Shown: positions 28,205 through 64,000 of the stretch, in pieces
Position numbering within the stretch: position 1 is the first letter of the stretch
Layout of the letters: every line of letters starts with the position of its first letter
Assembly (NCBI GenBank): GCA_964057225.1
Contig: OZ059895.1
Span: forward strand, 17,918,001 to 17,982,000
Reading direction: 5' to 3'
DNA length: 64,000 nucleotides
DNA from: Auanema rhodensis
Taxonomy: Eukaryota; Animalia; Nematoda
The notes under the pieces: model-generated
The model's input: the letters and a program-made list of their open reading frames with translations, nothing else
What the model was told of the DNA's origin: nothing
The model's database searches: none
Translations under genes and position numbers: made by a program

Positions 28205-28324
28205 TTTTTTTTCTTTCTGAACACCTCAGTTTGAAGAAATAACATCTGTAAATCAATTCAAAATTACCCTCAACTGCTGAGCTTCGCCTCGTTCCTGTTT
28301 CTATTTGTTTCATATTGTTCATCT

Positions 28325-37300: not shown

Positions 37301-40300
37301 AAGAAGCAGAAATCCCATCTTAAACTCATATGGAAATTCAGATGCTACACATCTGAATACCCAACTGCAGATTTCTACTATTCGACTATATTTGATGATC
37401 TTTGAGAAACTTGGACATTCACCGGGCACTCAGTGACTAGAGCCAGTACTTTTTTGTGAACAAATCTTGTGGATAGGCTCGACATAAACCGATTTTCCGG
37501 AAGAAGCAGAAATCCCATCTTAAACTCATATGGAAATTCAGATGCTACACATCTGAATACCCAACTGCAGATTTGTACTATTTGACTATATTTGATGATC
37601 TTTGAGAAAAATGGACATTCACCGGGCACACAGAGACTGGATACTGTACTTTTTAGTGAACAAATCTTATGGATAGGCTCGACATAAACCGATTTTACGG
37701 AAAAAGCAGAAATCCCATCCTAAACTCATATGGAAATACAGATTCTACACATCTGAATACCCAACTGCAGATTTCTATTATTTGACTATATTTGATGATC
37801 TTTGAGAAAAATGGACATTCACCGGGCACACAGTGACTGGATACTGTACTTTTTTGTGAACAAATCTTTTGGACAGGCTCGACATAAACCGATTTTCCGG
37901 AAGAAGCAGAAATCCCATCTTAAACTCATATGGAAATTCAGATGCTACACATCTGAATACCCAACTGCAGATTTCTATTATTTGACTATATTTGATGATC
38001 TTTGAGAAAAATGGACATTCACCGGGCACACAGTGACTGGATACTGTACTTTTTTGTGAACAAATCTTGTGGATAGGCTCGACACAAACCGATTTTCCGG
38101 AAAAAGCAGAAATCCCATCTTAAACTCATATGGAAATTCAGATGCTACACATCTGAATACCCAACTGCAGATTTCTATTATTTGACTATATTTGATGATT
38201 TTTGAAAAAAATGGACATTCACCGGGCACACAGTCACTGGATACTGTGCTTTTTAGTGAACAAATCTTATGGACAGGCTCGACATAAACCGATTTTCCGG
38301 AAAAAGCAGAAATCCCATCCTAAACTCATATGGAAATACAGATTCTACACATCTGAATACCCAACTGCAGATTTCTATTATTTGACTATATTTGATGATC
38401 TTTGAGAAAAATGGACATTCACCGGGCACACAGTCACTGGATACTTTGCTTTTTAGTGAACAAATCTTGTGGACAGGCTCGACATAAACCGATTTTCCGG
38501 AAAAAGCAGAAATCCCATCCTAAACTCAATTGGAAATTCAGATTCTACACATCTGAATACCCAACTGCAGATTTCTATTATTTGACTATATTTGATGATC
38601 TTTGAGAAAAATGGACATTCACCGGGCACACAGTCACTGGATACTTTGCTTTTTAGTGAACAAATCTTATGGACAGGCTCGACATAAACCGATTTTCCGG
38701 AAGAAGCAGAAATCCCATCCTAAACTCATATGGAAATACAGATTCTACACATCTGAATACCCAACTGCAGATTTGTACTATTTGACTATATTTGATGATC
38801 TTTGAGAAACTTGGACATTCACCGGGCACTCAGTGACTAGAGCCAGTACTTTTTTGTGAATAAATCTTGTGGATAGGCTCGACATAAACAGATTTTCCGG
38901 AAGAAGCAGAAATCCCATCTTAAACTCATATGGAAATTCAGATGCTACACATCTGAATACCCAACTGCAGATTTCTACTATTCGACTATATTTGATGATC
39001 TTTGAGAAACTTGGACATTCACCGGGCACTCAGTGACTAGAGCCAGTACTTTTTTGTGAATAAATCTTGTGGATAGGCTCGACATAAACCGATTTTCCGG
39101 AAGAAGCAGAAATCCCATCTTAAACTCATATGGAAATTCAGATGCTACACATCTGAATACCCAACTGCAGATTTGTACTATTTGACTATATTCGATGATC
39201 TTTGAGAAAAATGGACATTCACCGGGAACACAGAGACTGGATACTGTACTTTTTTGTGAACAAATCTTGTGGATAGGCTCGACACAAACCGATTTTCCGG
39301 AAAAAGCAGAAATCCCATCTTAAACTCATATGGAAATTCAGATGCTACACATCTGAATACCCAACTGCAGATTTCTATTATTTGACTATATTTGATGATC
39401 TTTGAGAAAAATGGACATTCACCGGGCACACAGTCACTGGATACTGTGCTTTTTAGTGAACAAATCTTATGGACAGGCTCGACATAAACCGATTTTCCGG
39501 AAAAAGCAGAAATCCCATCCTAAACTCACATGGAAATACAGATTCTACACATCTGAATACCCAACTGCAGATTTCTATTATTTGACTATATTTGATGATC
39601 TTTGAGAAAAATGGACATTCACCGGGCACACAGTGACTGGATACTGTACTTTTTTGTGAACAAATCTTTTGGACAGGCTCGACATAAACCGATTTTCCGG
39701 AAAAAGCAGAAATCCCATCTTAAACTCATATGGAAATTCAGATGCTACACATCTGAATACCCAACTGCAGATTTCTATTATTTGACTATATTTGATGATC
39801 TTTGAGAAAAATGGACATTCACCGGGCACTCAGTGACTAGAGCCAGTACTTTTTTGTGAATAAATCTTGTGGATAGGCTCGACACAAACCGATTTTCCGG
39901 AAAAAGCAGAAATCCCATCTTAAACTCATATGGAAATTCAGATGCTACACATCTGAATACCCAACTGCAGATTTCTATTATTTGACTATATTTGATGATC
40001 TTTGAGAAAAATGGACATTCACCGGGCACACAGTGACTGGATACTGTACTTTTTTGTGAACAAATCTTGTGGATAGGCTCGACACAAACCGATTTTCCGG
40101 AAAAAGCAGAAATCCCATCTTAAACTCATATGGAAATTCAGATGCTACACATCTGAATACCCAACTGCAGATTTCTATTATTTGACTATATTTGATGATC
40201 TTTGAGAAAAATGGACATTCACCGGGCACACAGTCACTGGATACTTTGCTTTTTAGTGAACAAATCTTGTGGACAGGCTCGACATAAACCGATTTTCCGG

Positions 40301-41509
40301 AAAAAGCAGAAATCCCATCCTAAACTCAATTGGAAATTCAGATGCTACACATCTGAATACCCAACTGCAGATTTCTATTATTTGACTATATTTGATGATC
40401 TTTGAGAAAAATGGACATTCACCGGGCACACAGTCACTGGATACTGTGCTTTTTAGTGAACAAATCTTATGGACAGGCTCGACATAAACCGATTTTCCGG
40501 AAAAAGCAGAAATCCCATCCTCAACTCACATGGAAATACAGATTCTACACATCTGAATACCCAACTGCAGATTTCTATTATTTGACTATATTTGATGATC
40601 TTTGAGAAAAATGGACATTCACCGGGCACACAGTCACTGGATACTTTGCTTTTTAGTGAACAAATCTTGTGGACAGGCTCGACATAAACCGATTTTCCGG
40701 AAAAAGCAGAAATCCCATCCTAAACTCAAATGGAAATTCAGATTCTACACATCTGAATATCCAACTGCAGATTTCTACTATTTGACTATATTTGATGATC
40801 TTTGAGAAAATTGGACATTCACCGGGCACTCAGTGACTAGAGCCAGTACTTTTTTGTGAACGAATCTTATGGATAGGCTCGACATAAACCGATTTTCCGG
40901 AAGAAGCAGAAATCCCATCTTAAACTCATATGGAAATTCAGATGCTACACATCTGAATACCCAACTGCAGATTCGTACTATTTGACTATATTTGATGATC
41001 TTTGAGAAAAATGGACATTCACCGGGCACACAGTGACTGGATACTTTACTTTTTTGTGAACAAATCTTGTGGATAGGCTCGACATAAACCGATTTTACGG
41101 AAAAAGCAGAAATCCCATCCTAAACTCATATGGAAATACAGATTCTACACATCTGAATACCCAACTGCAGATTTCTATTATTTGACTATATTTGATGATC
41201 TTTGAGAAAAATGAACATTCACCGGGCACACAGTGACTGGATACTGTACTTTTTTGTGAATAAATCTTGTCGATAGGCTCGACATAAACCGATTTTCCGG
41301 AAAAAGCAGAAATCCCATCCTAAACTCAAATGGAAATTCAGATGCTACACATCTGAATACCCAACTGCAGATTCGTACTATTTGACTATATTTGATGATC
41401 TTTGAGAAAAATGGACATTCACCGGGCACACAGTGACTGGATACTTTACTTTTTTGTGAACAAATCTTGTGGATAGGCTCGACATAAACCGATTTTACGG
41501 AAGAAGCAG
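28325..41509. repeat. 200-bp satellite array, about 66 copies
   Basis: Period 200 (a few 198, one 201). Unit approx. CTAAACTCATATGGAAAT...CACATCTGAATACCCAACTGCAGATTTC...CAGTGACTG...TTTTCCGGAA...AATCCCATC. Confidence 0.98.
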
Positions 41510-41566
41510 TGGCAGAGCGTTGGTCTTGTAAACCAAAGGTCGGTGATTCAATCCCGCCTGGAGGCA
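41507..41566 (+). pseudogene. 5'-truncated tRNA-Thr at the satellite junction
   Basis: Lacks the 5' acceptor strand and most of the 5' D-stem; GGTGATTC change in the T-stem. Confidence 0.85.
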
Positions 41567-41728
41567 TTTTTTTTCTTTCTGAGCACCTCAGTTTGAAGAA
41601 ATAACATCTGTAAATCAATTCAGAATTACCCTCAACTGCTGAGCTTCGCCTCGTTCTTGTTTCTATTTGTTTCATATTGCTCATCCACAAACAGTGACTG
41701 TATAGAAATATTTTTCTTTCTTATTGTA

Positions 41729-41800
41729 GCCTCTATAGCTCAGTGGCAGAGCGTTGGTCTTGTAAACCAAAGGTCGGTGGTTCAATCCCGCCTGGAGGCA
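41729..41800 (+). tRNA. trnT-UGU: tRNA-Thr(TGT)
   Basis: Canonical 72-nt sequence followed by TTATTTTT. Confidence 0.93.
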
Positions 41801-41960
41801 TTATTTTTCTTTCTGAACACCTCAGTTTGAAGAAATAACATCTGTAAATCAATTCAGAATTACCCTCAACTGCTGAGCTTCGCCTCGTTCCTCTTTGTAT
41901 TTGTTTCATATTGTTCATCCACAAACAGTTATTGTATAAAAATTTTTTTCTTTCTTATTG

Positions 41961-42025
41961 TAGCTCAGTGGCAGAGCGTTGGTCTTGTAAACCAAAGGTC
42001 GGTGATTCAATCCCGCCTGGAGGCA
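41961..42025 (+). pseudogene. tRNA-Thr with a 9-bp deletion of the 5' acceptor strand
   Basis: TTGTAGCTCAG instead of TTGTAGCCTCTATAGCTCAG (deletion between TAGC repeats); also GGTGATTC. Confidence 0.85.
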
Positions 42026-42188
42026 AGTATTTTTCTTTCTAAACACCTCAGTTTGAAGAAATAACATCTGTAAATCAATTCATAATTACCCTCAACTGCT
42101 GAGCTTCGCCTCGTTCTTGTTTCTATTTGTTTCATATTGCTCATCCACAAGCAGTGACTGTATAGAAATATTTTTCTATCTTATTGTA

Positions 42189-42260
42189 GCCTCTATAGCT
42201 CAGTGGCAGAGCGTTGGTCTTGTAAACCAAAGGTCGGTGGTTCAATCCCGCCTGGAGGCA
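42189..42260 (+). tRNA. trnT-UGU: tRNA-Thr(TGT), last copy of the array
   Basis: Canonical 72-nt sequence followed by T8. Confidence 0.93.
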
Positions 42261-45200
42261 TTTTTTTTCTTTCTGAACACCTCAGTTTGAAGAAATAACA
42301 TCTGTAAATCAATTTAGAATTACACTCAACTGCTGAGCTTTGCCTCGTTCCTTTTCCAACTTTGTGCCGTTTTGTTTTTTCTGTTTTATGTTTTTCATCC
42401 ACAAGCTGCAAAGGATGTGTTTTTTTTTCAAACTTCAATGATTTTGGCAGAAGTTAATGTTTAAAACACTTGTACTTTGTGAATAGTGTTTTTTGTTCTG
42501 TTATTGTTTTGTATTAACAAATTTTATCGGTATTTTTCTAGAATATATGTTGATAGATTGTTGTTTAACTTCAATAGTTGAACATGAATCCAAATTGTTT
42601 TTTTATAACCAGAGTGATTTGAAAGGTTCAATACTAGGTCATGTGTATTTGCATATTTGATGTTGAGTATTTCAGGTGAGACTGCTATTAGAGCAGAGTT
42701 TGCCAGCTGAAGAATTGAAGAGAGTTTGGATGAAAAAGAAAAAAAGATGCAATGATTAGTATAGATCGTAATACTCTCTCGAGATGCCTATATCTGTATA
42801 TACACATTGTTCTGTTGCGGTCATTCTTGGTTAAAGAAGAAGAGAAAAGGAAAAAAACTACATGCAGATTTGTTTGTCTTAGATAACAACTAATATTCTT
42901 ATATGACACTCCGTACATAGGTCAGCAGCACATCATCAGCACTACTTCGCTAATTGTCGGATCTAATTGTACTGAGTATGAACTGTTGTATTGATGGTTA
43001 ATATAGATAGAATAGTTATATTGACGATTATACAGGATGTTATAACGGAAATACCTATATGTTATAAATGTATGATGATCTACATATATGTTCTCTTATG
43101 ATATCTGGTACTTGTTAGATCTTTAGCATAGGATAATCATTATGTGAAAAATGTATTTAAAAAAAGATAGTTGGGATTCGTAGATGTGTAGAGGCTGAAT
43201 AACACGGTTTTCGAATTTTTCCAAAATCAGCTGTAATAGCTACTAACATATGAGTATTTTCTAATATTCAAATCAATTGGCATTGAACTTGGAAGATGTA
43301 TTTTGATATCGAGAAGTTTTCATAACTTTGGTAATATTTTTTAAATTTTATTCTCGATATTTTGGTTTCTCGTCTCCCTAACTATACCATCAAGTGCATA
43401 TACTATAGAGACTCTTATTAGGATATCTATCATACTTCTTAAGTAAATTACCGTATTCATTGGAAGACTGTTTGAGATTATGAGCAATCACCTCATCCAG
43501 GCCATCCAAGTATTTTTTTCTGTGTCTATCCATTTGAATGCATGCGATTAACCTAGCTGAATGACAGCAGAGTGAATACAAACAATGGACTTGTAGAGCT
43601 GATTGGAGGGGAGGGGTTCTCAGAGATTTTTGAATACGAGAGAAAGAAAGAGAGGGTAACAGAGAAAGAGAGAAATAAAAAAAGAAAGAAAGAGAGAAGC
43701 AGAGAGGGAGAAGAGAGTCGGCGGACATGCTTCATGGAAAGAAGTCCCTAAGGACGGTCTTTGTCTGTATCATCTCTCTCAAATCTTTACGATCCATATA
43801 GATAGATGAACTATTTTTTTTTTGAATTTTCATGATGACAGAAGGTCTATACAAAGTACCGATGAATAAATTTTGACAGTGTGATACGATTGAATGAATA
43901 TAAATTATGTTTCTTTTAGATATGGGTACTATGAATAGATTGCATTATGTGGTGATGATTGTCTCATAAACGTCATGAGTACCAGCTGTAAGTTTTCAAT
44001 AAGGCTTCAACTTGACTTGAACTATCATTTACATATGAAACAATTGAAAATGATGATGTGATTACATACAAAACTGATGATGAAGCGCAAAGCAAGGCAG
44101 TATGATACCATAGATATTCGTAGCGACAGATGAATGCAATCGATGTAGGATATGCAAACCTTTTCGCGGATCCTAATCTAATTGTTGTACTTGATATCAT
44201 CATCTCAAACATTTGTTGCTAATTGCTATTGAGAAGCATTTAATCGGAATCTCTTTTCATGGGCCGCTCTAATCATCTTAAGCTTAACTGTCTATGTATA
44301 TCTGTTCAAGAATACCGTAATCGAATTAATATTTTTTGTCTTTCCGACAGCATTAAGAACTGTATTCAAGAGTGAAGCGTGAGGCGGTGCAAGCCTTTTG
44401 GCGCAAACATCTGTTCCATTCAGCAGGCATAGTGGCGATTAGATACAAAAATTCAACGGAAAAGTAAACTTAATATCTTTTGAGTAGTAATGAGTTTTAC
44501 TATTTGACATAGATATCAAAACTATTCAGCTTTTTCTAATTATTACGGCTGCGATTGGAAGAGTAATGATCGTAAAGCGCTTACTCAGGTTGCCACATTA
44601 AAGCGGCATATTACCAAGACGGTATTAGGTTACAGGTTATGCCGGTCTCTTGTATTCCTTGCTGTTACGGTTATTGGAATAAATATATGGATAAAGATGA
44701 ACAAAAAAGAAGAATAAGAAGATGAAAAATAAGAACAGAAGGGCTTTTGAAGCAAGCGAATGGCTAGGAATTTCAAACACAGACTAAGTTCAATCTATTA
44801 GCATGCTATTTGAAATGTGTTCTTTTCACATAAAATTTCTTATCAGTCATGCTATATATTAGTTTTTATGTTCAATCTCAATAAAAGAAAACAAGTGAAG
44901 CACAATTGCTATGACGAATTAAATGTTTTATCCTAAATCTATAATTATAATTACACTGAATTCATGAAATTATTATTTTTTTAAATTATAACTGTTAAAA
45001 ATCTTTTCATTATCTTGTTGTTCTATATTTGAAAGTATGTATGTATTAATATGTTTCATTTAGACTTTTCATTATTCCTCTAATTATTCGTTTTTTAATT
45101 CAAAATCATTCAAAATATTTTTCAATATGTATATATATAAAATAATAATTGTATTGTACTGTTATTTCAACGAAAAACGTATGTTAACATGTGTAGGACA

Positions 45201-50391: not shown

Positions 50392-51258
50392 TTACTTTTT
50401 GCCGTAAGGTCCACCAAATCCTCCGTATGGAGCACCGTATCCTCCATATGGAGCACCGTATCCACCGTATGGAGCACTGTATCCTCCGTATGGAGCACCG
50501 TATCCTCCGTAAGGAGCGCCGTATCCTCCACCAAATCCTCCGTAGTTTCCATTGAATCCACCATAGCTGCCACCATATCCACCTGGTCCAAAGCCAAATG
50601 GCTCATAATTGGCGTTGGCGTAGTTAGGAACTCCGAATGGTGGTGGATAGCTCACACCATGTTCATACCCGAAATTACCACTACCACCCAATTTACTTGC
50701 GGCACTGTTGATTGCTCCTCCGGCGGCATTAGCAGCACCATTGATAGCTCCTCCAGCTAAGTTGGCAGCTCCGTTAACAGCTCCTCCGGCGGCATTAGCA
50801 GCACCATTGATAGCTCCTCCAGCAAAATTGGCAGCACCATTTATCATATTGCTAGCTGCATGAGCAACAGTATCGATGAATCCTCCTGCACTATCAGCAG
50901 CATCGTCAACAATTTCCTGAGCTTTTGTTTTTCCGCTGTCTTCTTTTTGTTTTTTCTCTACGTCAGTTTTTTCATCCTAAAAAATTTTAAATTACTAGTT
51001 TTCCTATCAAAGTATTTATCATTTTTATTGAACATCCGCATAAATTTAACTCTAAGAAAAGGGTTTGTATGAAGGCGGAAGAAGGTTTTAATCGAGTTTA
51101 AAGTATAGATCATATAATCATTGAAATATCTATCTAACTCCGTAAGTAGCAAAGGAATTAGTCGGAAATGAAAATATATTAAATGAACTTACTTTTCCGT
51201 GTGCCAATACCATAAGTGCACTAAGCATAATAGCAATATAATGATGTCTTTTCAACAT
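50392..51258 (-). CDS. Secreted Gly/Ala/Asn- and Gly/Tyr/Pro-repeat protein (gene A), 216 aa; exons 51258-51193, 50976-50392
   Basis: Signal-like exon MLKRHHYIAIMLSALMVLAHGK, phase-0 GTAAGT...TTTTAG intron, charged spacer, 11-aa GGAINGAANxA repeats, then YGAPYGG repeats. Confidence 0.85.
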
Positions 51259-51316
51259 TTGTACAAGTTTTTGAGGCTCCAATAAGAGTCTACGCACGAC
51301 TAGATTCATTTTAGAC

Positions 51317-51338
51317 TTTTATAGATAAAGTCTTATCA
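51317..51338 (-). promoter_or_regulatory. GATA site plus TATA box of gene A
   Basis: Minus strand TGATAAGACTTTATCTATAAAA. Confidence 0.55.
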
Positions 51339-54003
51339 TTAGTTCAACGTAATAGCATGTTTGCATCTCTTGCTAAGTTTTTTTCTTTTGTTTTTCAAAT
51401 GGTCAAATAGTCAATACAACAGTATTGATTTGTATTAATCATAGTAAACACCTGTATATTCAGATGTTGTTTGTTACTTCTAAAGTCCACTTTCCTCCTT
51501 TCCGCAATATTGGTAGCTTTTATGAGCTTAAACTGTTCGAATTTTATGAACATGCTTAGTAAATATTTCCGGAAACTAACAATAAAATCTGTTTTTTTTA
51601 TTTGCAATGAAAAAATATCGTAAAAAAGTTGACAGTGTATAATATTTTTGGTTAGCATACTATTGTAAAGAAAATTATTCCAAATAATTTATTAAAAAAA
51701 AAAAGAAGAAAATTTAAAATCAGATAATAATTGGAATTATGCATATTAAATATTATATTAAAGTTAAATATGAATATAATTAAGATTTCTAGCTTGTAAT
51801 AATACGATAAAAGTTAAAATAATTAACTATAAAACTATACATTGAAAGAAAATTTCAAAATGTATAACTACATTTAAGCATATAAATGCAAAATTTCAAA
51901 ATTGTTTTTAAACAAAATATGAAATGATGACAAAGCTGAAAAAAATAGGTAATATAATTGATTAAAGTTTTAACACGACCTGTCACTATACCACCACCAA
52001 CTAATCAGTTTATAGCATATGTGTGTTGATTGAAAAAAAAATTATTTATCAACTGAAGAAACGTATAATTTTTATTTTTTTGATTGTAATATATTATCAG
52101 TATCAGTAGTTAACATTAATCCCTTCCGCATTTCTTTTTTGATGATTTATGATTTATACATTGTGTTTTATCATTTTTTTGAAGATTCTGTGACTAATTA
52201 TTTTGAATATTATTATTCTTTCCAATTTCCATATGTTTATATTTACAGTTTGATGTTTTTTTTATATTACAATGTATTTCAAACAAAATCAAAGAAGTGT
52301 TTTGTTTAATATTGAAAAGTATAATCAAATATTATACTTATGAGTATATTTTATTATTTATTAAACTTAATATTTGTTTTTTACTTTTCTTTTTTTGCTT
52401 AATTGATTGCGATTGTCTAGACAAAAAGAATGTTCTTTGATTTTATTTATTATGTTTTTGTAAGTACTTTAGTATTTTTTCGTTTTTAAAGATTAATGCC
52501 TATAGTTTTAATCAAAATTAACAAACAAGAACCAAAGCTAAAAGTTGAAGTACAAATGAAACTGTAAGAATAAAGCTTCATCATCTTAAATGTAAGGTTA
52601 GATTTTGAAATTAACCAAAGGCATTATAATAATTTTGTTTCTCCCTTTTACATAGATATGTGGAAATCTTGTGTCAACTCATTTTGGTAATATTCAATTT
52701 GTCATATGATTTTTTATATATTGTTATATCAGTATTACCTATACCTAACATAAAATATTTATTAAGATGTTTATTTTTATATTTTTTTTTAATTTAAATA
52801 AACTTTGTATTATAACATTTATATATGAACTACTTTATACATATTCACATGTTTTTTTAAAATTACTTATAATTTAAATATTTCAATATAAGAATACTAA
52901 ATGAAAAATTTGAAACAATGTGCTAGAGAACTGAACATGAAAAATATTTTTAAAGTCTTAGCATTAATATTGTGAAAGTTATGATCAAGGTTATTGATAT
53001 ACTATATGAATTTTATTAATTTGTTCTGGTGAAATGACAACACAAGCTGATATTCAAAATTAAAAATGGTTTTAAAGCTTTTTTTGCCTTCAAACACTTT
53101 TTAAGTTGGTATGTTACGAGTTGTATCTCATATGTGATGAATATATAGTTTATATATTAATCAAATATTTATAATTTAGTAATAATTTAATATTATTTTT
53201 AAAAAAAATATTATATTTAGATTTAGAACGGCATTCTAATTATTTTAATTTTATCAAACACAAGACAAGATGAAGCAGAAGTAACTGACAAATTACTAAC
53301 TTTGTACTTTGTTGAAGAAAAATATGTTCAACTTTAAAATGAATAATAACATAAATCGTTTTGAATTGAAGGAGTTTATGTCTTGCTTGTCATCTTATAT
53401 ACTCGGCCTTATCTGTGATAAATTTATAATGCATTATAATAGTTTATAACATATACATAAATAAATACATATTTATATGTTTTTCTTTCATATTTTTGAT
53501 TTTTTTATTATTTAACACTTCAATAAACAGTGTAACTATAGTTCAATAAAAAAATGTCTAATTACGATATAGCTTTGACGTGTTAAAAGTTTCATATCAA
53601 CTAATTAATTATTTTAAATATTGTTAGGAACTTTTAAAGTTTTATATTTATAATTTATTAATAATAATTATAAATAACAACATTCTAAATATTATAATTT
53701 GGTTAATAATCTAGCATTCAAGTTCATTTTATATTTTAGATTAACAATATGGATCTATTCTACCTTCCACTGTAATTGCTTCACCGAAATGAAGCTTTTC
53801 TGACGCTTCTTCTGATCCTTATAAACTAATAAACAAAAAATAGAAAACAAAATAGTTTTATAAACCTTCACACATTTATATTTAACTTTAGCACGTTTTA
53901 GATAAAAAATATATTTATGGCCTTACTACATCAACTTCACAAATCTAATAAAAATTAAAAAATACATTAAGGCTTAGTTAAGTATGTATTTGAAAGTAAT
54001 TAT

Positions 54004-54028
54004 AGATAAGCAGTTGTATATAAACTGA
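54004..54028 (+). promoter_or_regulatory. GATA site plus TATA box of gene B
   Basis: AGATAAGCAGTTGTATATAAACTGA; the 16-mer GTTGTATATAAACTGA recurs upstream of gene C. Confidence 0.65.
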
Positions 54029-54076
54029 TGCTGTCAAATAAGATCATAGAAGATTTTACTTCTTCGAGTCCTCATC

Positions 54077-55098
54077 ATGAGACACACATGTCGGCGAATC
54101 GCAATGCTTTGCGTCGTTCTTGGAATAGCTTCAGCTAATAGTGTAAGTTGATCAACTCTTTAGATTTATTATTCATTTTATTGTTGTAGGCTGGCAGAGG
54201 TCGAATTCTTGATAGAAATCCTGTTGTTGGAAATGCTGGAGTTGATGAGGACCCCCGTATCCTTGGGGCTTTTCTCGGACCACAAGGCATCCGTAATGTC
54301 ATGGAATCTGTTGGAGGGCTTCTTGACGGTGTTGTTGGAGGATTTATAGGAAAACCACGAGCTCTTGAGGATCCTCGCATTCTTGATGCTCTTTTTGCTC
54401 CACAAGGATTTGAAAATGTATTGTCGACAGTTGGAGGGCTTATTGATGATGCCATCGGGCAAGTCGAGCTTGGTGGTTTGAAAACACAAGGCATTCTTTC
54501 GAATACTGGAGCTCTTGCCGATAACGTTGTAGGACACATAGGATCCGTCGTTGGAAATCTTTTGACACCACATAAACAAGCTAGGCTTCTGGGACTCGGA
54601 AATTTGGTTCGCCCCGAAATAAATTCTGCTCAAGGTTTAGTAGGCAACGTTGGAAATAATGTCGGTAATATGATTGGAGGAGGACTGGGACATCAATCAT
54701 TTATTCCCCAGATGGGACAAAACCTGATTGGAGATGGATTAAATAGACCATTTACAAGTCATATTGGTACATTTATTGGAGGTGGACTAAGCCGGCCATC
54801 TTCAAGCCATATTGGTACATTTATTGGAGGAGGACTTAACCGACCATATCCTACCAATGTTGGTACTTTCATTGGAGGAGGACTGCCCAATATTCCCAAG
54901 ATGGAGCCACTTCCCCTTGGTATTCCTCAAACATCCGCTGAAGTTGTAGTTGAGAAAAATGTTCTTAAAGAACAAGCAATGGAACAGATTCGTGAAGCCG
55001 AGGCAGAAGCTGACGCTGTAGTTGAAGCAGTCATGGAAGCCGAAGCTGACGCCGAGGCTACCGTTGATGCCGTAGCTGAGGCTGAAGGCCTTATGTAG
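54077..55098 (+). CDS. Secreted Gly-rich repeat protein with acidic Glu/Ala tail (gene B), 324 aa; exons 54077-54142, 54190-55098
   Basis: Signal-like exon MRHTCRRIAMLCVVLGIASANS, 47-nt phase-0 intron, in frame with the 265-aa ORF; TATA box at 54017-54024. Confidence 0.87.
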
Positions 55099-55649
55099 GC
55101 TAATTGCCTAAATGCTAATTGTGATTGGAATATTTTCATTATCACTGTTTGTATACATTGTGCCTTTTCTACAATAAATGCTTCTGATTCATAACTGTAA
55201 ACATTGTTAATTCATACATGAAAAGAAAAGAATCATATTATTAAATTGACTGATATGTGTGTGCTAGCGATTTCAGCTGAATTACTGCATGATGGTGTAT
55301 ATTCTAAGAATGTCTTCATTTTTTGGTCATTGAAAGCTTGAACGTATAACGTCTAAACTTGCTATATGTTTCAAAATTGCTTGCCATCCTAACGTGACCT
55401 TTCACGCAAATGCATACCATCCCAACGTGACCTTTCACGCGAAATGCTCATTTGAACTTCTAATACTTACTACAGTTAAACCTGAGGATGTTCAATCTGA
55501 ATTTGAAGAAGATTACTTCAACGTTTTTTTTAGAAAAAAAACATCAACACAAAATGGAAAGTTTCAGCTTTGAACAATGAACAATGAACAATTTAATAAT
55601 TTCATTATTCAAAGCCAAACAGAAAGAGGGGAAGGATTGATAAAAAAAA

Positions 55650-55722
55650 TAGAGAGAGAGAGAGAGCGAGAGAGACAAAGATAGAGAGAAAGAGAGAGAG
55701 AGAAAGGGAGAAGGAGAGATAG
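55650..55722. repeat. GA-rich microsatellite
   Basis: Imperfect (AG)n tract; a similar purine tract lies at about 43638-43717. Confidence 0.75.
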
Positions 55723-56105
55723 AGGTAATTTTTATACTTAACTAAAATACCTCCGCTAGTCATTGTCTCAATCAGACTCAAGTAACGTATAGGCAATAAA
55801 TAATGATAAATAATATCAATCTAAAGTAAATACAGCTTTTTTAAATTATTTACCGAAAAGCTAAGTTTCAGGCATGTTTTTAATTATGAATGAAGCAAAG
55901 TGTAACCCATTATCGGCTTCAAAAAATTATTCTATTTTATATATATATGTATATGTTCATTCTTGCACAAAATATTATAATAAGTATACATATACTAAAA
56001 AGTTTTTTAAGCTGTAAATTATTCATTTGGAAAAATTATTCTTGAAATATACAAATACAGAAAGAAAGGAATATCATATTTTCAAATTCAAAATTTAGCG
56101 TTTAT

Positions 56106-57021
56106 CTATAAACGACTTTCTGCTTCTGCTTCAACTTCAGCTTCTGGTTCGACATCAACTTCTGCTTCAACGTTAATTTCTGCGTCTGCTTGTGCATCTG
56201 CACCTGCATCTACATCTGGTTCTGGTTCTGCTTCTGGTTCTGCTTCTGGTTCTGGTTCTGCTTCTGCTTCTGCTTCTGCTTCTGCTTCTGCTTCAGCGTT
56301 AATTTCTGCTTCTGCTTCTGCTTCTGCTTCCACTTCTAGTGCAACTTCAGCTTCTAATTCATTCTCAGCTTCAATTAAATATTCGGCTTCTGCTTCAGCT
56401 TCGAGTAAATACTCGGCTTCAGCTTCTGCTTCAAGTAAGTATTCTGCTTCTGCTTCAGCTTCTAGTAAATACTCGGCTTCAGCTTCAGCTTCAAGTAAGT
56501 ATTCGGCCTCTGCTTCAGCTTCAAGCAAATATTCAGCCTCAGTAAGGTCTCCAACAGTGGCTTCCAGGTTGGCCTTTTCTTGAAGAATAGCTTCATATAA
56601 CGCGGGATCTACAACAATTATGTTTGGATGAGCGGGCCTCAAAAGCCCAGCCAGAAGTCCGGCCATGTTACCGTATGAACCTCCGATAGATCCTCCCGAA
56701 GATGCACCAAGTCCCAAAGATCCAAGAAGTCCCAAAGATCCACCAAGACCCAAAGCTGCTCCCAAAGAGCCACCCGCAGATCCACCTGCGGATCCACCGG
56801 CGGATCCACCTGCGGATCCACCGGCAGATCCACCCGCAGATCCTCCCAGAGATCCGCCAAGGGATCCACCTAAACTGAGAGAGAGAATACGAGCTCGATC
56901 AGCCTAAATTCGTTTGATATATAAGAATAAAAAAGAAAAAAGGACAACTTACGCTAGCTGCCAGGGCAACTGAGAAGATGACGGAAAAGATCAAAATTCG
57001 TTGAGAGGTATGTTTCATCAT
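56106..57021 (-). CDS. Secreted GGSA-repeat / EAEAEYLL-repeat acidic protein (gene C), 288 aa; exons 57021-56953, 56903-56106
   Basis: Signal-like exon MMKHTSQRILIFSVIFSVALAAS, 49-nt phase-0 intron, then ADRARILSLSLGGSLGG(SAGG)n in frame with the 219-aa ORF. Confidence 0.87.
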
Positions 57022-57065
57022 GTTAAGCTGAAAAATACAAACTTCGGTGCTCATATTCTGCTACT

Positions 57066-57092
57066 TCAGTTTATATACAACGGCTGTTATCT
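57066..57092 (-). promoter_or_regulatory. GATA site plus TATA box of gene C
   Basis: Minus strand AGATAACAGCCGTTGTATATAAACTGA, 45 nt upstream of the ATG. Confidence 0.65.
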
Positions 57093-58589
57093 GCATAATC
57101 TGTTTGATCTACATATCAATCTGAATTAATGAAAACAAAAAAAAACAATGTTTTCATTTCATATCAAGCTGCTATGAACAACAATAACCTCAAGGAGTAA
57201 AGCTTCTTTCAAATATTCATTCAACTGACCACTACAAGAAGCTCTAATGTAACATATAATGTTTGAAATTATTCTAGGATGAGTAGTATATGTGTTGTTT
57301 ATATTAACTATAGTTATTCATGAAATAGTGTTGATGATTTGCTCTTAAAGTTTCGACCATAGTATGCGTACTATGGACAATATGAGTAAAGACCCTTATA
57401 TTGAAGCACCTAATACACTATAATATTACATTCTATATTTTTGTTTGTTTTAAAAGTTCTGATTTTCAATATAAAATTAAGAGTACTAACTATATATTTT
57501 TACATGAATTAATTATTATATGAATGGAAGGAAGTATCGTTTTTGGTTTTTTTTGTTTCTTTTTTTTACTTTGTTTACATAACTAGATATAAGTATAGAG
57601 CAACAACAACATACTTTGAAACTGTGATTGTTTGAAAAAACGATTTAATTCCTTGTTCGTTTTTTTTCAATACGTCATACATATAATAGTAAAGTTTATT
57701 CTGATGAGGAAGTATTAATCAGATTATATTTTCAAGCGGTTTTTACTTAATTATTTTGAATATAATCATTACAGTTGAATATTATTTTAAATATTTCTCT
57801 TATAATCTTATACAATGAAAAAAAAAGTTTAATTTTAAAAAAATGTATTTCAACAAGATCATAGGGTTAACAACGTAGCGTTAAGTGAAGTATCATCATA
57901 TTAAACAAGTATTATCTAATTGTATTCCCCTTCAATTTAATTTTCTTCCTGTGCTGATTTCATCATATGATCAAAAAAAATCGCAGTTACTTCATACGAG
58001 TGAAAGAGTTCAAACTTGGATTAACAAAATGAAATATAGAAACAGCCAAGAGGAAAATACTCTGATATTACCTAGTATATTAAGTATTTATAATAAAAAT
58101 ATACATTTATATATTAATATATTTATATATATTTACTATATATACTACTAATTATCAGTATGAACTATGAAACTTGAGTCAAACATCAGATTATAACTGG
58201 AATATGGAATATATTTAGTTTAAGCAACTGTTCTGGGTTCCTAATTTTATTTTTAAAATTGCTCATTTATCTAATAATACTGATTACAATCATGTCCTGA
58301 TATATCGTTTCATTAAATGTTTCTGTGCTGACTGGATCTGATTGTTCACATTTTCATGTCGTTGCTTCATTCAACACGTATAAACATAGAATAAATAAAG
58401 TAAACTATTTATTTGCTTCATCCTCTAGTCTCATAACAGTATTTCTTTGAGTTACTTCTTTTGTCTACGTGTTTGTACCAAACGATATTTCAACACAGCA
58501 GATAAAATATATAAGTTTTATTTTTATTTGAATACATCACATCAGTGTTATGTACAGACAATGGAATCACTTGAATGTTTCAAATATTT

Positions 58590-59883
58590 TTAGAATCCGA
58601 GGACTGGGATTGTTAAACCACCGAAACCTCCAGCGGCTCCTCCAATCATACCTCCAGCAGTCATTTGAGCTCCGTTAACCATTCCTCCGGCGGCTCCAGC
58701 GGCTCCTCCAACCATACCTCCAGCAGCCATTTGAGCTCCGTTAACCATTCCTCCGGCGGCTCCAGCGGCTCCACCGACTACTCCACTGGCGGCCATATGA
58801 GCTCCGTTAACCATTCCTCCGGCGGCACCGGCTGCTCCACCAACTACTCCAGTGGCGGCCATGTGAGCTCCGTTAACCATTCCTCCGGCGGCTCCAGCGG
58901 CTCCACCGACTACTCCACTGGCGGCCATATGAGCTCCGTTAACCATTCCTCCGGCGGCTCCAGCTGCTCCGTTGACTACACCAGTGGCGGCCATGTGAGC
59001 TCCGTTAACCATTCCTCCAGCGGCTCCAGCAGCTCCATTGACAACTCCAGTAGCGGCCATATGAGCTCCGTTGACAATTCCTCCGGCGGCTCCAGCGGCT
59101 CCATTGACAATTCCTCCGGCAGCTCCAGCGGCTCCATTGACAATTCCTCCGGCGGCTCCAGCAGCTCCGTTTACAATTCCAGAGGCGGCTCCAGCGGCTC
59201 CGTTAACGATTCCTTGGGCAGCTTGTGCTAATCCTCCGATAATAGATCCTAATCCAAGATGAGCTCCCTTGACAATTCCTCCGGCGGCTCCAGCAGCTCC
59301 GTTGACAATTCCTCCGGCGGCTCCAGCAGCTCCGTTAACCACTCCGCTAGCGGCCATGTGAGCTCCATTGACCATTCCTCCGGCTGCGGTAGCAGCTCCG
59401 TTGACCATTCCTCCGGCAGCAGTAGCAGCTCCGTTGACCATTCCTCCGGCGGCTCCAGCAGCTCCGTTAACCATTCCGCTAGCGGCCATGTGAGCTCCAT
59501 TGACCATTCCTCCGGCGGCTCCAGCAGCTCCATTGACCATTCCTCCGGCTGCTCCAGCGGCTCCTCCAACCATTCCGGATGCCGCCATATGAGCTCCGTT
59601 GACCATTCCTCCGGCGGCTCCAGCGGCTCCTCCAACCATTCCTCCGGCGGCTCCAGCGGCTCCGTTAACCATTCCTCCAGCTGCACCTCCGCCTAACATT
59701 CCACCAAGCCCGAGAAGTGAGAGGAATCGAGCTCTTTTGATGAGCTCTACTTCTTGGCGAGAGGCATATCTAGCCTGAACATAGAAAAAATATGTTATTG
59801 AGGGTTATTGATACTTATATTACCTCAGTGGCTACAACAGCCATAATAAGAGCAAGTGCCAAGAGCAGGTGGCGACGGAACAT
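58590..59883 (-). CDS. Secreted Gly/Ala/Met-rich 11-mer repeat protein (gene D1), 414 aa; exons 59883-59824, 59774-58590
   Basis: Signal-like exon MFRRHLLLALALIMAVVATE, 49-nt phase-0 intron, ARYASRQEVELIKRARFLSLLGLGG, then about 30 GGMVNGAAGAA-type repeats, ending PVLGF*. Confidence 0.88.
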
Positions 59884-59930
59884 TTTGGTAAGTGACCAAA
59901 GAAATAATACTTATTTCCATTTTGGTCTCC

Positions 59931-59952
59931 TTATATATTTTGAACGTTATCA
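59931..59952 (-). promoter_or_regulatory. GATA site plus TATA box of gene D1 (copy at 62823-62844 for D2)
   Basis: Minus strand TGATAACGTTCAAAATATATAA. Confidence 0.55.
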
Positions 59953-60481
59953 CTGATTAGTTTTAATCCTGTTTATTGTACCTATTTGCTGATGAAATGT
60001 TTTTGCTTATTTAGGCCCTGCTTTCCGATTTTCTGATAATGTGACTTTGGTACTTCCTTGTCATTGTGTTAGGAGGTAGCGTTCTCACCTTCTACTATGC
60101 ACTGTAAGCAGAGAGACAAACTGATAACTCATAATCAGCTTAATGAATTACTGAAGTTTTTCACATATCAAATAACTCCATTGTATATGTTATATTTATT
60201 TTTTTATGTAAATTTTCTAAACCGCTGTTCCTTTAATTTAAAATGTTGTGAATCTTATTCAATCATGAAATAATTTAATGATGAGCATAAAAACCAGCGT
60301 ATTCGACTGTTCAACATAATTTACAATTTATTTTATGTATAGGATATCTCTCTAAACTTGTGAAATAAAGTAGTTGTGTTGGTACTTAAGTGCTCACACA
60401 CACGCGCATTATATAAGTTTTATTTTTATTTGAATACATCACATCAGTTCTATGTACAGTCTATGGACTGATATAAATATT

Positions 60482-60616
60482 TCAATTTTTATATTCGAAT
60501 CCTAGGGCTGAGGGGGTTAAACCACCGAATCAGAAAGCAGTACCAGCTATCATTACGCTCATGAGATCGGAGGCTACAGCGGCTCCATTGACAGCTGCTG
60601 AGCCAGCCATGTTAGC
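60482..60616 (-). pseudogene. Relic of the 3' end of a gene-D paralogue
   Basis: Minus strand reads ANMAGSAAVNGAAVASDLMSVMIAGTAF*FGGLTPSALGFEYKN* (compare FGGLTIPVLGF*). Adjacent 60410-60460 matches the gene D 3' UTR. Cut off at the duplication breakpoint 60617. Confidence 0.7.
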
Positions 60617-61481
60617 TATATTTCCAAGCGGTTTTTACTTAATTATTTTGAATATAATCATTACAGTTGAATATTATTTTAAATATTTCTCTTATAATCT
60701 TATACAATGAAAAAAAAAGTTTAATTTTAAAAAAATGTATTTCAACAAGATCATAGGGTTAACAACGTAGCGTTAAGTGAAGTATCATCATATTAAACAA
60801 GTATTATCTAATTGTATTCCCCTTCAATTTAATTTTCTTCCTGTGCTGATTTCATCATATGATCAAAAAAAATCGCAGTTACTTCATACGAGTGAAAGAG
60901 TTCAAACTTGGATTAACAAAATGAAATATAGAAACAGCCAAGAGGAAAATACTCTGATATTACCTAGTATATTAAGTATTTATAATAAAAATATACATTT
61001 ATATATTAATATATTTATATATATTTACTATATATACTACTAATTATCAGTATGAACTATGAAACTTGAGTCAAACATCAGATTATAACTGGAATATGGA
61101 ATATATTTAGTTTAAGCAACTGTTCTGGGTTCCTAATTTTATTTTTAAAATTGCTCATTTATCTAATAATACTGATTACAATCATGTCCTGATATATCGT
61201 TTCATTAAATGTTTCTGTGCTGACTGGATCTGATTGTTCACATTTTCATGTCGTTGCTTCATTCAACACGTATAAACATAGAATAAATAAAGTAAACTAT
61301 TTATTTGCTTCATCCTCTAGTCTCATAACAGTATTTCTTTGAGTTACTTCTTTTGTCTACGTGTTTGTACCAAACGATATTTCAACACAGCAGATAAAAT
61401 ATATAAGTTTTATTTTTATTTGAATACATCACATCAGTGTTATGTACAGACAATGGAATCACTTGAATGTTTCAAATATTT

Positions 61482-62775
61482 TTAGAATCCGAGGACTGGG
61501 ATTGTTAAACCACCGAAACCTCCAGCGGCTCCTCCAATCATACCTCCAGCAGTCATTTGAGCTCCGTTAACCATTCCTCCGGCGGCTCCAGCGGCTCCTC
61601 CAACCATACCTCCAGCAGCCATTTGAGCTCCGTTAACCATTCCTCCGGCGGCTCCAGCGGCTCCACCGACTACTCCACTGGCGGCCATATGAGCTCCGTT
61701 AACCATTCCTCCGGCGGCACCGGCTGCTCCACCAACTACTCCAGTGGCGGCCATGTGAGCTCCGTTAACCATTCCTCCGGCGGCTCCAGCGGCTCCACCG
61801 ACTACTCCACTGGCGGCCATATGAGCTCCGTTAACCATTCCTCCGGCGGCTCCAGCTGCTCCGTTGACTACACCAGTGGCGGCCATGTGAGCTCCGTTAA
61901 CCATTCCTCCGGCGGCTCCAGCAGCTCCATTGACAACTCCAGTAGCGGCCATATGAGCTCCGTTGACAATTCCTCCGGCGGCTCCAGCGGCTCCATTGAC
62001 AATTCCTCCGGCAGCTCCAGCGGCTCCATTGACAATTCCTCCGGCGGCTCCAGCAGCTCCGTTTACAATTCCAGAGGCGGCTCCAGCGGCTCCGTTAACG
62101 ATTCCTTGGGCAGCTTGTGCTAATCCTCCGATAATAGATCCTAATCCAAGATGAGCTCCCTTGACAATTCCTCCGGCGGCTCCAGCAGCTCCGTTGACAA
62201 TTCCTCCGGCGGCTCCAGCAGCTCCGTTAACCACTCCGCTAGCGGCCATGTGAGCTCCATTGACCATTCCTCCGGCTGCGGTAGCAGCTCCGTTGACCAT
62301 TCCTCCGGCAGCAGTAGCAGCTCCGTTGACCATTCCTCCGGCGGCTCCAGCAGCTCCGTTAACCATTCCGCTAGCGGCCATGTGAGCTCCATTGACCATT
62401 CCTCCGGCGGCTCCAGCAGCTCCATTGACCATTCCTCCGGCTGCTCCAGCGGCTCCTCCAACCATTCCGGATGCCGCCATATGAGCTCCGTTGACCATTC
62501 CTCCGGCGGCTCCAGCGGCTCCTCCAACCATTCCTCCGGCGGCTCCAGCGGCTCCGTTAACCATTCCTCCAGCTGCACCTCCGCCTAACATTCCACCAAG
62601 CCCGAGAAGTGAGAGGAATCGAGCTCTTTTGATGAGCTCTACTTCTTGGCGAGAGGCATATCTAGCCTGAACATAGAAAAAATATGTTATTGAGGGTTAT
62701 TGATACTTATATTACCTCAGTGGCTACAACAGCCATAATAAGAGCAAGTGCCAAGAGCAGGTGGCGACGGAACAT
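61482..62775 (-). CDS. Second copy of the 11-mer repeat protein (gene D2), 414 aa; exons 62775-62716, 62666-61482
   Basis: Offset 2892 from D1; identical translated protein. Confidence 0.86.
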
Positions 62776-63718
62776 TTTGGTAAGTGACCAAAGAAATAAT
62801 ACTTATTTCCATTTTGGTCTCCTTATATATTTTGAACGTTATCACTGATTAGTTTTAATCCTGTTTATTGTACCTATTTGCTGATGAAATGTTTTTGCTT
62901 TAGTGATACTTCCTGTGGCTCTCTTAATTGTGTTCCATAGGTTCATTCAAACTCACATTCTTTACCAACAATACAGTATGGGCTTCACATTTATTCATCG
63001 CAACGATTGTATAAATCCCAAAAATAAAACATATCTGCGACCTGAATGTACAACTTGTATAAGCTTTGTTCAAAAATCGTAATACAATTACGTGAGCTCT
63101 GCCTAAATTGGACTTCATCACATTATGTAATTCATTGAATAAATATTTCTCCAGTTAACTAATGCTTGTAAGCTTTGTACTAAGTTCAGTTGGGATTTTG
63201 GAAAAAATAGTTTTTATTGGAGTGTATTTTTTGGCGGAAACTTGAATGAGTACTTCAAAACATTAATTTATTCATCCTTAATCAATTCTAACTGATTCCG
63301 TAAACAAATTACCTTTCAAATTCTTCTCAATTACAAGTTAGCTACTTAACAATTCGTATTTCTTCCTTATCGTGTTGGGAGGTAGCGTTCTCACCTTCTA
63401 CTATGCACTGTAAGCAGAGAGACAAACTGATAACTCATAATCAGCTTAATGAATTACTGAAGTTTTTCACATATCAAATAACTCCATTGTATATGTTATA
63501 TTTATTTTTTTATGTAAATTTTCTAAACCGCTGTTCCTTTAATTTAAAATGTTGTGAATCTTATTCAATCATGAAATAATTTAATGATGAGCATGCTGTT
63601 AGAAAAATAATTTAAAAAACTTAAATAAATAAAATAAGATTTATTTTTCATGTTACATTCATATTGTAATTTATGTACAGAAAAATATTGGTATCAAAGA
63701 AAGGGGTTTGTTATTTTC

Positions 63719-64000
63719 TTAGAATCCGAGAGAAGCGGATCCTTTACCACCGGCTCCAGCCTTAACTCCAACTCCGACTCCAACTCCAACATCTGCCTTG
63801 ATTGATCCAATACCTTTAAGGACATTACCAAGTCCATTAACAACTCCAGCTGTTCCTTTAAGGGCGCCTGCAACAGCTCCTCCAACTCCAGCTCCAATGC
63901 CTCCAACAACATTGCCAGCACCGTCAACTACTCCTTTAACAGCTCCGCCAACTCCAGCACCAACACCTCCGAGAAGGCCACCAACAACGTTGATTGCTCC
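63719..64000 (-). CDS. C-terminal 93 aa of another Gly/Val/Ala-rich family member (gene E), partial at the window edge
   Basis: Open frame GAINVVGGLLGGVGAGVGGAVKGVVDGAGNVVGG...KAGAGGKGSASLGF*. Ends LGF* like gene D and shares TATGTACAG in the 3' flank. The ORF track shows the wrong frame here. Confidence 0.8.
   Translation of the reverse strand, partial: GAINVVGGLLGGVGAGVGGAVKGVVDGAGNVVGGIGAGVGGAVAGALKGTAGVVNGLGNVLKGIGSIKADVGVGVGVGVKAGAGGKGSASLGF

Follow-up and report, generated by a model that had tools for sequence, protein, structure and literature searches.

A putative lineage-restricted cluster of secreted low-complexity protein genes with a common core promoter in the nematode Auanema rhodense

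A cluster of about 23 genes for repeat-rich proteins with putative signal peptides occupies approximately 52 kb (C3:17.968-18.021 Mb) of contig C3 (GenBank OZ059895.1) of the nematode Auanema rhodense. Its first part lies in a 64-kb stretch of DNA, the window (C3:17,918,001-17,982,000), the edge of which cuts the locus. Six gene types, designated A to F, carry the same compact promoter module. The preferred reading, to which a probability of roughly 0.55 is given, is that they encode taxon-restricted, co-expressed, secreted, Cys-free proteins of block-copolymer-like design, which would come together extracellularly as an elastomer-like matrix forming part of the cuticle or of another apical extracellular layer. 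By analogy, the best-supported description of this matrix is as a counterpart of Tyr-cross-linked cuticle proteins and of disordered pharyngeal-cuticle families, not demonstrably related to either. The lineage-restricted cluster of secreted low-complexity proteins proposed in an initial annotation of the window is supported, in a larger form: the 14 kb assigned to it there fall well short of its real extent.

Gene content and relationships

The window and 60 kb beyond its end, about 123 kb in all, were read, and gene models were checked by translation of the proposed exons. Five complete genes (A, B, C, D1 and D2) were confirmed between window positions 50,392 and 62,900, and the partial gene E and the relic of the initial annotation were likewise found in place. 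A search of the species' own genome with A and D returned a run of further copies just past the window end, which brings the content of the locus to A, B, C, two D genes, two three-exon E genes and 16 tandem F genes. The window DNA is AT-rich and eukaryotic, with short GT-AG introns. Exon 1 of A to D comprises 20-23 codons encoding basic residues, a run of 10 or more hydrophobic residues and then small residues, and is followed by a phase-0 GT-AG intron (216 nucleotides (nt) in A, 47-49 nt in B, C and D) and a single repeat exon. The two-exon plan described earlier thus holds for these four types and breaks down for E, which has an extra phase-1 intron. AATAAA signals lie downstream of the stops of A, B and D.

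Gene A is encoded on the minus strand by a 22-codon signal-peptide exon (51,258-51,193) and, beyond the 216-nt intron, a second exon of 194 codons plus stop (50,976-50,392), the product of which has a charged N-terminus, five 11-residue NGAA repeats (11-mers), a Gly/Tyr tail with four YGAP and one YSAP, and a GKK end. Gene B, on the plus strand, has a 22-codon signal-peptide exon (54,077-54,142), a 47-nt phase-0 intron and an exon of 302 codons plus stop (54,190-55,098), with two DPRIL...PQG...VGGL repeats, three HIGTFIGGGL repeats and a Glu/Ala helical tail. Gene C, on the minus strand, has a 23-codon signal-peptide exon (57,021-56,953), a 49-nt phase-0 intron and an exon of 265 codons plus stop (56,903-56,106), with a RARILSLSLGG motif, GGS(A/L) repeats and 10-residue EAEYLLEAEA repeats. 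It ends in Ser-Arg-Leu (56,106-56,114), like a peroxisomal targeting tripeptide, which is probably chance given the N-terminal signal peptide.

The two D genes lie on the minus strand. D1 has a 20-codon signal-peptide exon (59,883-59,824), a 49-nt phase-0 intron and a second exon of 394 codons plus stop (59,774-58,590), the product of which starts with ARY, continues with KRARFLSLLGLGG and about 30 NGAA 11-mers containing Met and His, is interrupted centrally by GLGSIIGGLAQAA and ends in LGF. D2 (exon 1, 62,775-62,716; exon 2, 62,666-61,482) encodes an identical protein. The pair is carried by two minus-strand tandem duplication units of 2,284 bp each, 99.91% identical, the first (57,725-60,008) including D1 with its promoter and 3' flank and the second (60,617-62,900) D2. 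A decayed D-type C-terminal piece on the same strand (60,497-60,622; NGAA, FGGLT..LGF), with an internal stop, abuts the duplication boundary. A 226-bp non-coding segment, present between cluster genes in three copies of 99% identity (window 60,063-60,288 and 63,369-63,594; C3:17,985,751-17,985,976), marks segmental duplications that built the D/E part of the locus.

Gene E is present in two copies, E1 and E2, with products of roughly 1,000 residues. The window holds, on the minus strand, the 3' end of E1 exon 3 (63,719-64,000; the stop and last 93 codons, with the LGF end), and E1 runs past the window to C3:17,984,991. Exon 1, the signal exon, has 20 codons, 12 of them identical to those of D. 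Exon 2, of 696 codons in E1, encodes Gly/Ala/Leu repeats, a Gly/His/Lys repeat and a non-repetitive, acidic, Tyr-rich domain of about 190 residues; a 70-nt phase-1 intron separates it from exon 3 (333 codons in E1, 436 in E2), which encodes GGIGG repeats together with a Gly/His/Glu block, enlarged in E2, and a Gly/Val block with the LGF end. The F genes lie on the plus strand as F0 followed by 15 units spaced approximately 2.0 kb apart, and each consists of a 16-codon signal exon, a 42-nt phase-0 intron and one long exon, which has the same architecture as gene A: an ARY...FLS start, NGAA 11-mers and a Gly/Tyr tail, here repeating GGSYGG and GVPGVIYGG. In none of the copies is the signal exon, a splice site, the promoter module or the reading frame disrupted. 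With 16 F, two D and two E genes, the locus shows dosage amplification.

The initial annotation proposed a single origin for the whole set. A, D and F can be aligned over their length; the N-terminal ARY...(R/K)FLS motif and the central GLGSIIGGLAQAA interruption occur in both D and F, and on this evidence the three clearly form one family. Exon 1 ties E to D, as do the ARY start, the LGF end and a similarity in upstream sequence. B and C are joined to the rest only by structure, promoter and short motifs: the likeness of C to D is limited to a 12-residue N-terminal motif (RAR, I or F, LSL..LGG), beyond which BLAST found nothing more, and that of B to C is limited to the Glu/Ala tail. The motifs cited in support of common descent are all present (Glu/Ala tails in B and C, NGAA 11-mers in A and D, LGF ends in D and E), and a single ancestor for all six gene types is possible. 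B and C each occur once in the genome. Distant own-genome matches of C and D on other contigs were rejected as unrelated mucin-like, SR-like or Gln/Ala-rich proteins lacking the promoter module. Because these matches are unrelated and B and C are single copy, the family is regarded as confined to one locus.

For D, F0 and F1, the ratio of nonsynonymous to synonymous substitution rates (dN/dS) is 0.34-0.37 at dS 0.45-1.1, values that are approximate since repeats were aligned; the D/F reading frame is therefore considered constrained and the family not merely recent. In D and F, 88% of Gly codons are GGA, similar to actin.

A shared proprotein-convertase step, also proposed in the initial annotation, was not borne out. 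The strings on which it was based (GRGRILD, DRARILSL and KRARFLSLL) exist, and not all of them stand just after the signal peptide, the RAR of D lying 17 residues into exon 2. Proprotein convertases cleave after (K/R)-Xn-(K/R), where n = 0, 2, 4 or 6, a motif that is not conserved across the members and that fits only D (KRAR) and F0 (R-x4-R). At the same position, 15 of the 16 F genes have EAK, A and E have no such site, and B and C have R-x-R, which is unsupportive because it falls outside the rule; the GRGRIL of B is a degenerate version of the DPRIL repeat that occurs within B itself. What C, D and F have in common is one basic residue followed by (F/I)LS(L/M), which could be a candidate monobasic cleavage or docking motif.

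The shared promoter module

In all six gene types, GATAAG or GATAAC is followed after 6-8 nt by TATATAA (TATAAAA in A), the module being placed 46-60 nt before the ATG. It was found on the minus strand at 51,317-51,337 for gene A (GATAAG, 8 nt, TATAAAA; about 60 nt before the ATG), at 57,071-57,091 for C, at 59,931-59,951 for D1 and at 62,823-62,843 for D2, and on the plus strand at 54,005-54,023 for B. A further minus-strand module at 53,395-53,413 resembles the promoter of E and has no open reading frame behind it; it is a probable relic of a lost member. Between E1 and E2, an exact copy of the D promoter module (C3:17,985,205-17,985,225) stands without D exon 1; it was brought there by the 1.5-kb duplication (98% identity) from which E2 arose.

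The module pattern matched six times in the window, against 0.09 expected, and 25 times in the 123 kb, all within the cluster and two of them orphans. A stricter pattern matched 174 times genome-wide, with 24 of these in the 52-kb locus; a reversed-pattern control gave 172. The proximal GATA-TATA module was absent from the three vitellogenin and 20 cuticle-collagen promoters read, which have just a TATA box at a similar distance. On these counts and comparisons the module is regarded as specific, or nearly so, to the locus. The vitellogenin promoters have TGTCAAT in the proximal position and GATA sites further upstream, and about half of the collagen promoters have TATATAAG 25-75 nt before the ATG. 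Use of the module as a pointer to the gut (vitellogenin) or the epidermis (collagen) was rejected, neither promoter set carrying a proximal GATA. Of the new findings, the shared module carries the most weight; it argues for co-regulation of the set by a GATA factor.

The vitellogenin genes themselves, seven near-identical copies, lie at 14.54-14.74 Mb of contig C4. The three promoters read share TGTCAAT, 9 nt, TATATAA and an ATG about 55 nt downstream, and the TGTCAAT, the VPE1 box of C. elegans, is here at a fixed position beside the TATA box.

Composition, homology searches and known families

Gly makes up 27-39% of A, D, E exon 2 and F, and 13-17% of B and C; Ala reaches 29% across the products. 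D is almost uncharged (31% Gly, 29% Ala and 7% Met). Gly/Ala blocks followed by Tyr-rich tails characterize F and A (18-22 Tyr residues in A and F1), and in E an acidic Tyr-rich domain is combined with two blocks, one of neutral Gly/Ala and one of Gly/His; E exon 3 and F0 have 18-19 His residues. C contains 22% Glu, B has its Glu/Ala tail at the C-terminus, and the isoelectric point (pI) is 4.1-5.0 for A, B and C. Repeat periods are 10, 11 and 12 residues (30, 60 and 66 nt). No Cys was counted in any exon-2 product of A to F, and the earlier statement that the mature regions hold neither Cys nor collagen Gly-X-Y was confirmed on these products. AlphaFold gave no confident fold for B (mean predicted local distance difference test score (pLDDT) 43), the Glu/Ala tail being its sole confidently predicted helix (pLDDT approximately 80-88).

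All searches used single exons and not joined spliced proteins. No Pfam domain was found in any exon product, the few matches all being sub-threshold: that of C to PF05887, a trypanosome acidic repeat protein, was compositional and scored 22.9 bits where the cut-off is 100, while two others had E approximately 0.4-0.9. Word-index protein searches with B, whole or as residues 1-235, and with the acidic domain of E gave no match, and exact look-ups of exon and open-reading-frame products found none present in the protein collection, which includes neither B nor the Auanema rhodense annotation and may also lack close Auanema relatives. A full HMMER search with B against 1.84 billion representatives gave two matches at E approximately 1e-5, both to unrelated repeat proteins. 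The ESM Atlas returned no usable match for B or the acidic domain of E, a PDB sequence search none for B, D and E exon 2, and a metagenome scan none for B. For A, D and F, isolation is based on Pfam, the PDB (D only) and the own-genome search.

Memberships in the epicuticlin, collagen, resilin and antimicrobial-peptide families each fail at least one tested defining feature. Nematode cuticle collagens have a Col_cuticle_N domain, long Pro-rich Gly-X-Y runs and conserved Cys clusters; the products here have no Pfam domain and no exon-2 Cys, and the one G-x-x run, five triplets without Pro in C, is put down to chance. Resilin carries a chitin-binding domain (Rebers-Riddiford type) between repeat blocks, and Pfam found no such domain in the products at E <= 1. 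Gene A does have repeated YGAP in Gly-rich units, a resilin feature: YGAP is the hallmark of the dityrosine-cross-linked resilin A repeat (PMC3233583), and in insect pro-resilin, where it provides the Tyr for the cross-link, it recurs, as in gene A, within a Gly-rich, disordered, secreted protein. This is a resemblance of motif. No Pfam domain is present here, and resilin belongs to another phylum, so that the likeness is one of convergent composition at most.

Ala/Gly-rich tandem-repeat proteins that are thought to be dityrosine-linked occur in nematode extracellular matrices (PMC10802564). Among these, the epicuticlins and CUT-2 of the insoluble cuticle are like the present products in being secreted, in their Ala/Gly-rich tandem repeats, in Tyr motifs proposed or shown to link as dityrosine and, for some, in strong acidity. 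Epicuticlin repeats are 49-51 residues long with YGDE and (S/A)GYR (PMC10802564), and membership was rejected on the repeat unit, here 10-12 residues; neither YGDE nor (S/A)GYR turned up when A, B, C, D, E exon 2, F0 and F1 were scanned for them.

The C. elegans pharyngeal cuticle contains the secreted low-complexity families IDPA, IDPB, IDPC, APPG, NSPB and FIPR, which, as here, are nematode-only, signal-peptide-bearing, intrinsically disordered multigene families of biased composition; they are co-expressed in waves and thought to form a flexible cuticle (PMC9629831). The proteins described here are much larger than NSPB and FIPR, and their 11-residue NGAA unit, single locus and one GATA-TATA promoter set them apart. 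Other Gly-rich elastomeric or hardened biomaterials include elastin, lamprin, abductin and the Gly/His-rich jaw and beak proteins. Shared with them are short repeats rich in Gly that contain Val/Pro/Tyr (GVPGVIYGG in F), Gly/Met repeats (D) and Gly/His blocks (E exon 3), the resemblance being one of composition and motif, with no homology.

Interpretation, alternatives and chromosomal setting

For an elastomer-like extracellular matrix, a GATA factor would turn on the whole set in one cell type, and the signal peptides would direct the products to secretion. Flexible hydrophobic bulk would then come from the Gly/Ala 11-mer blocks of A, D, F and E, and the tails rich in Tyr (with YGAP in A and GGSYGG in F) could be dityrosine-linked by the extracellular peroxidase system of the nematode cuticle. 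Gly/His blocks (E exon 3, F0 and D) may bind metal or serve as a pH switch, and the Glu/Ala helices and acidic Tyr-rich domain (B, C and E) may bind cations or maintain the solubility of the set during transport. Candidate tissues are the epidermis, the lining of the pharynx or buccal cavity, the gut and the reproductive tract, and the uses suggested in the initial annotation, such as a coat, glue, plug or eggshell layer, are conjectural. Several points weigh against this reading. Signal peptides were judged by eye, without a predictor; the GATA site does not identify a tissue; the likeness to resilin, elastin and abductin is compositional and not one of homology; the alignment of repeats leaves the dN/dS values approximate; codon bias is weak in B, C and A; and orphan genes with low-complexity products can be recent in origin and have little function.

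An inducible epithelial defence role, under an epidermal GATA switch, is an improbable alternative, though it is the strongest of the three considered. The products would be counterparts, by analogy and not homology, of C. elegans nlp-29/cnc, tandem clusters of Gly/Tyr-rich secreted products with promoter GATA sites and a requirement for ELT-3 (PMC2453101). The tandem cluster with promoter GATA sites is matched here in organization, the tails of A and F are Gly/Tyr-rich, A ends in Gly and two Lys, resembling a peptide-processing end, and expansion in copy number is typical of defence genes. However, the nlp-29/cnc products are short cationic peptides or precursors, whereas those here are long neutral or acidic block proteins, of 216 to approximately 1,050 residues and not peptides of fewer than 100. 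NLP/CNC membership was rejected on exon-2 products of 194-696 residues, against precursors of tens of residues in that family, on Tyr-rich tails without internal basic cleavage sites and on the low pI of A, B and C. By mass the products consist mostly of Gly/Ala repeat without charge or of polyanionic Glu/Ala, whereas such peptides are usually cationic, and dN/dS near 0.35 indicates constraint and not diversifying selection.

Slightly less probable still is a surface- or lipid-associated helical coat, in which the 11-mers of D, F and A would form hendecad amphipathic helices on a lipid layer, for instance the epicuticle or the eggshell permeability barrier, or protect against drying, as a film and not a cross-linked bulk. 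An 11-residue periodicity is typical of lipid-binding and desiccation-related helices, and the repeats here keep strictly to that period, each unit having one Asn and two hydrophobic residues. AlphaFold placed a long helix over residues 52-173 of D at pLDDT approximately 70, but the model as a whole has a mean pLDDT of 49 and no confident fold, some 31% Gly fits stable helices poorly, and the units lack the charges of apolipoprotein or late embryogenesis abundant (LEA) 11-mers.

That the genes are largely idle young orphans, a by-product of unstable repeat DNA beside large tandem arrays, is the least likely of the three, for although no homologue was found for B or the acidic domain of E, relics and orphan promoters occur in the locus, the surroundings are repeat-prone (a 107-copy tRNA array and satellite) and several frames are open across the repeats, the signal exon, splice sites, promoter module and frame are intact in every copy, six gene types that have diverged to dS of up to 1.1 retain the same module with dN/dS near 0.35, and D and F show codon bias.

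A more specific form of the extracellular-matrix reading is put forward tentatively, as clearly less likely than the general one. The locus could be a dedicated 'materials locus', in which one GATA-driven promoter type co-expresses six kinds of Cys-free block protein that build an elastomer of several components or a hardened lining, for instance of the mouth, pharynx, spicules or eggshell, specific to Auanema and undescribed in nematodes. Equally speculative is the assignment of its blocks as a Gly/Ala 11-mer, a resilin-like Tyr tail, a Gly/His metal-binding block and a polyanionic Glu/Ala helix.

Nematode extracellular matrices are increasingly viewed as made of taxon-restricted, disordered, phase-separating proteins, and few cases tie such genes to a shared regulatory logic. 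Six divergent gene types in one locus, with one core promoter and about 23 copies, make a compact testable system in a species in which genome editing works. The locus could show how a new extracellular material assembles and how orphan structural genes arise and amplify, and its Cys-free mix of resilin-like, elastin-like and Gly/His motifs may interest biomaterials research.

A 2026 preprint gives the Auanema rhodense germline assembly as 180.9 Mb with 19,554 tRNA genes, and reports that somatic cells eliminate satellite-rich DNA. Sampling of contig C3 found ordinary non-satellite DNA at 17.85-19.0 Mb and a 176-bp satellite from 19.5 Mb on. The locus thus lies at least 1 Mb inside gene-rich, non-satellite DNA and, because of this distance from satellite DNA, is probably kept in somatic cells. 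Isolated tandem-repeat blocks with 192-bp and 264-bp units, distinct from the 176-bp satellite and surrounded by ordinary DNA, were seen at C3:17,700,001-17,703,000 and C3:18,300,001-18,303,000.

Upstream of the cluster, window positions 1-28,323 and 41,507-42,356 hold 107 intact tRNA-Thr(UGU) genes, arranged head-to-tail in a 234-bp unit with a break at approximately 13.5-15.9 kb; tRNA arrays of this kind have been reported for Auanema rhodense. A 200-bp satellite (28,320-41,509; 66 copies, 95% identity) is embedded within the array.

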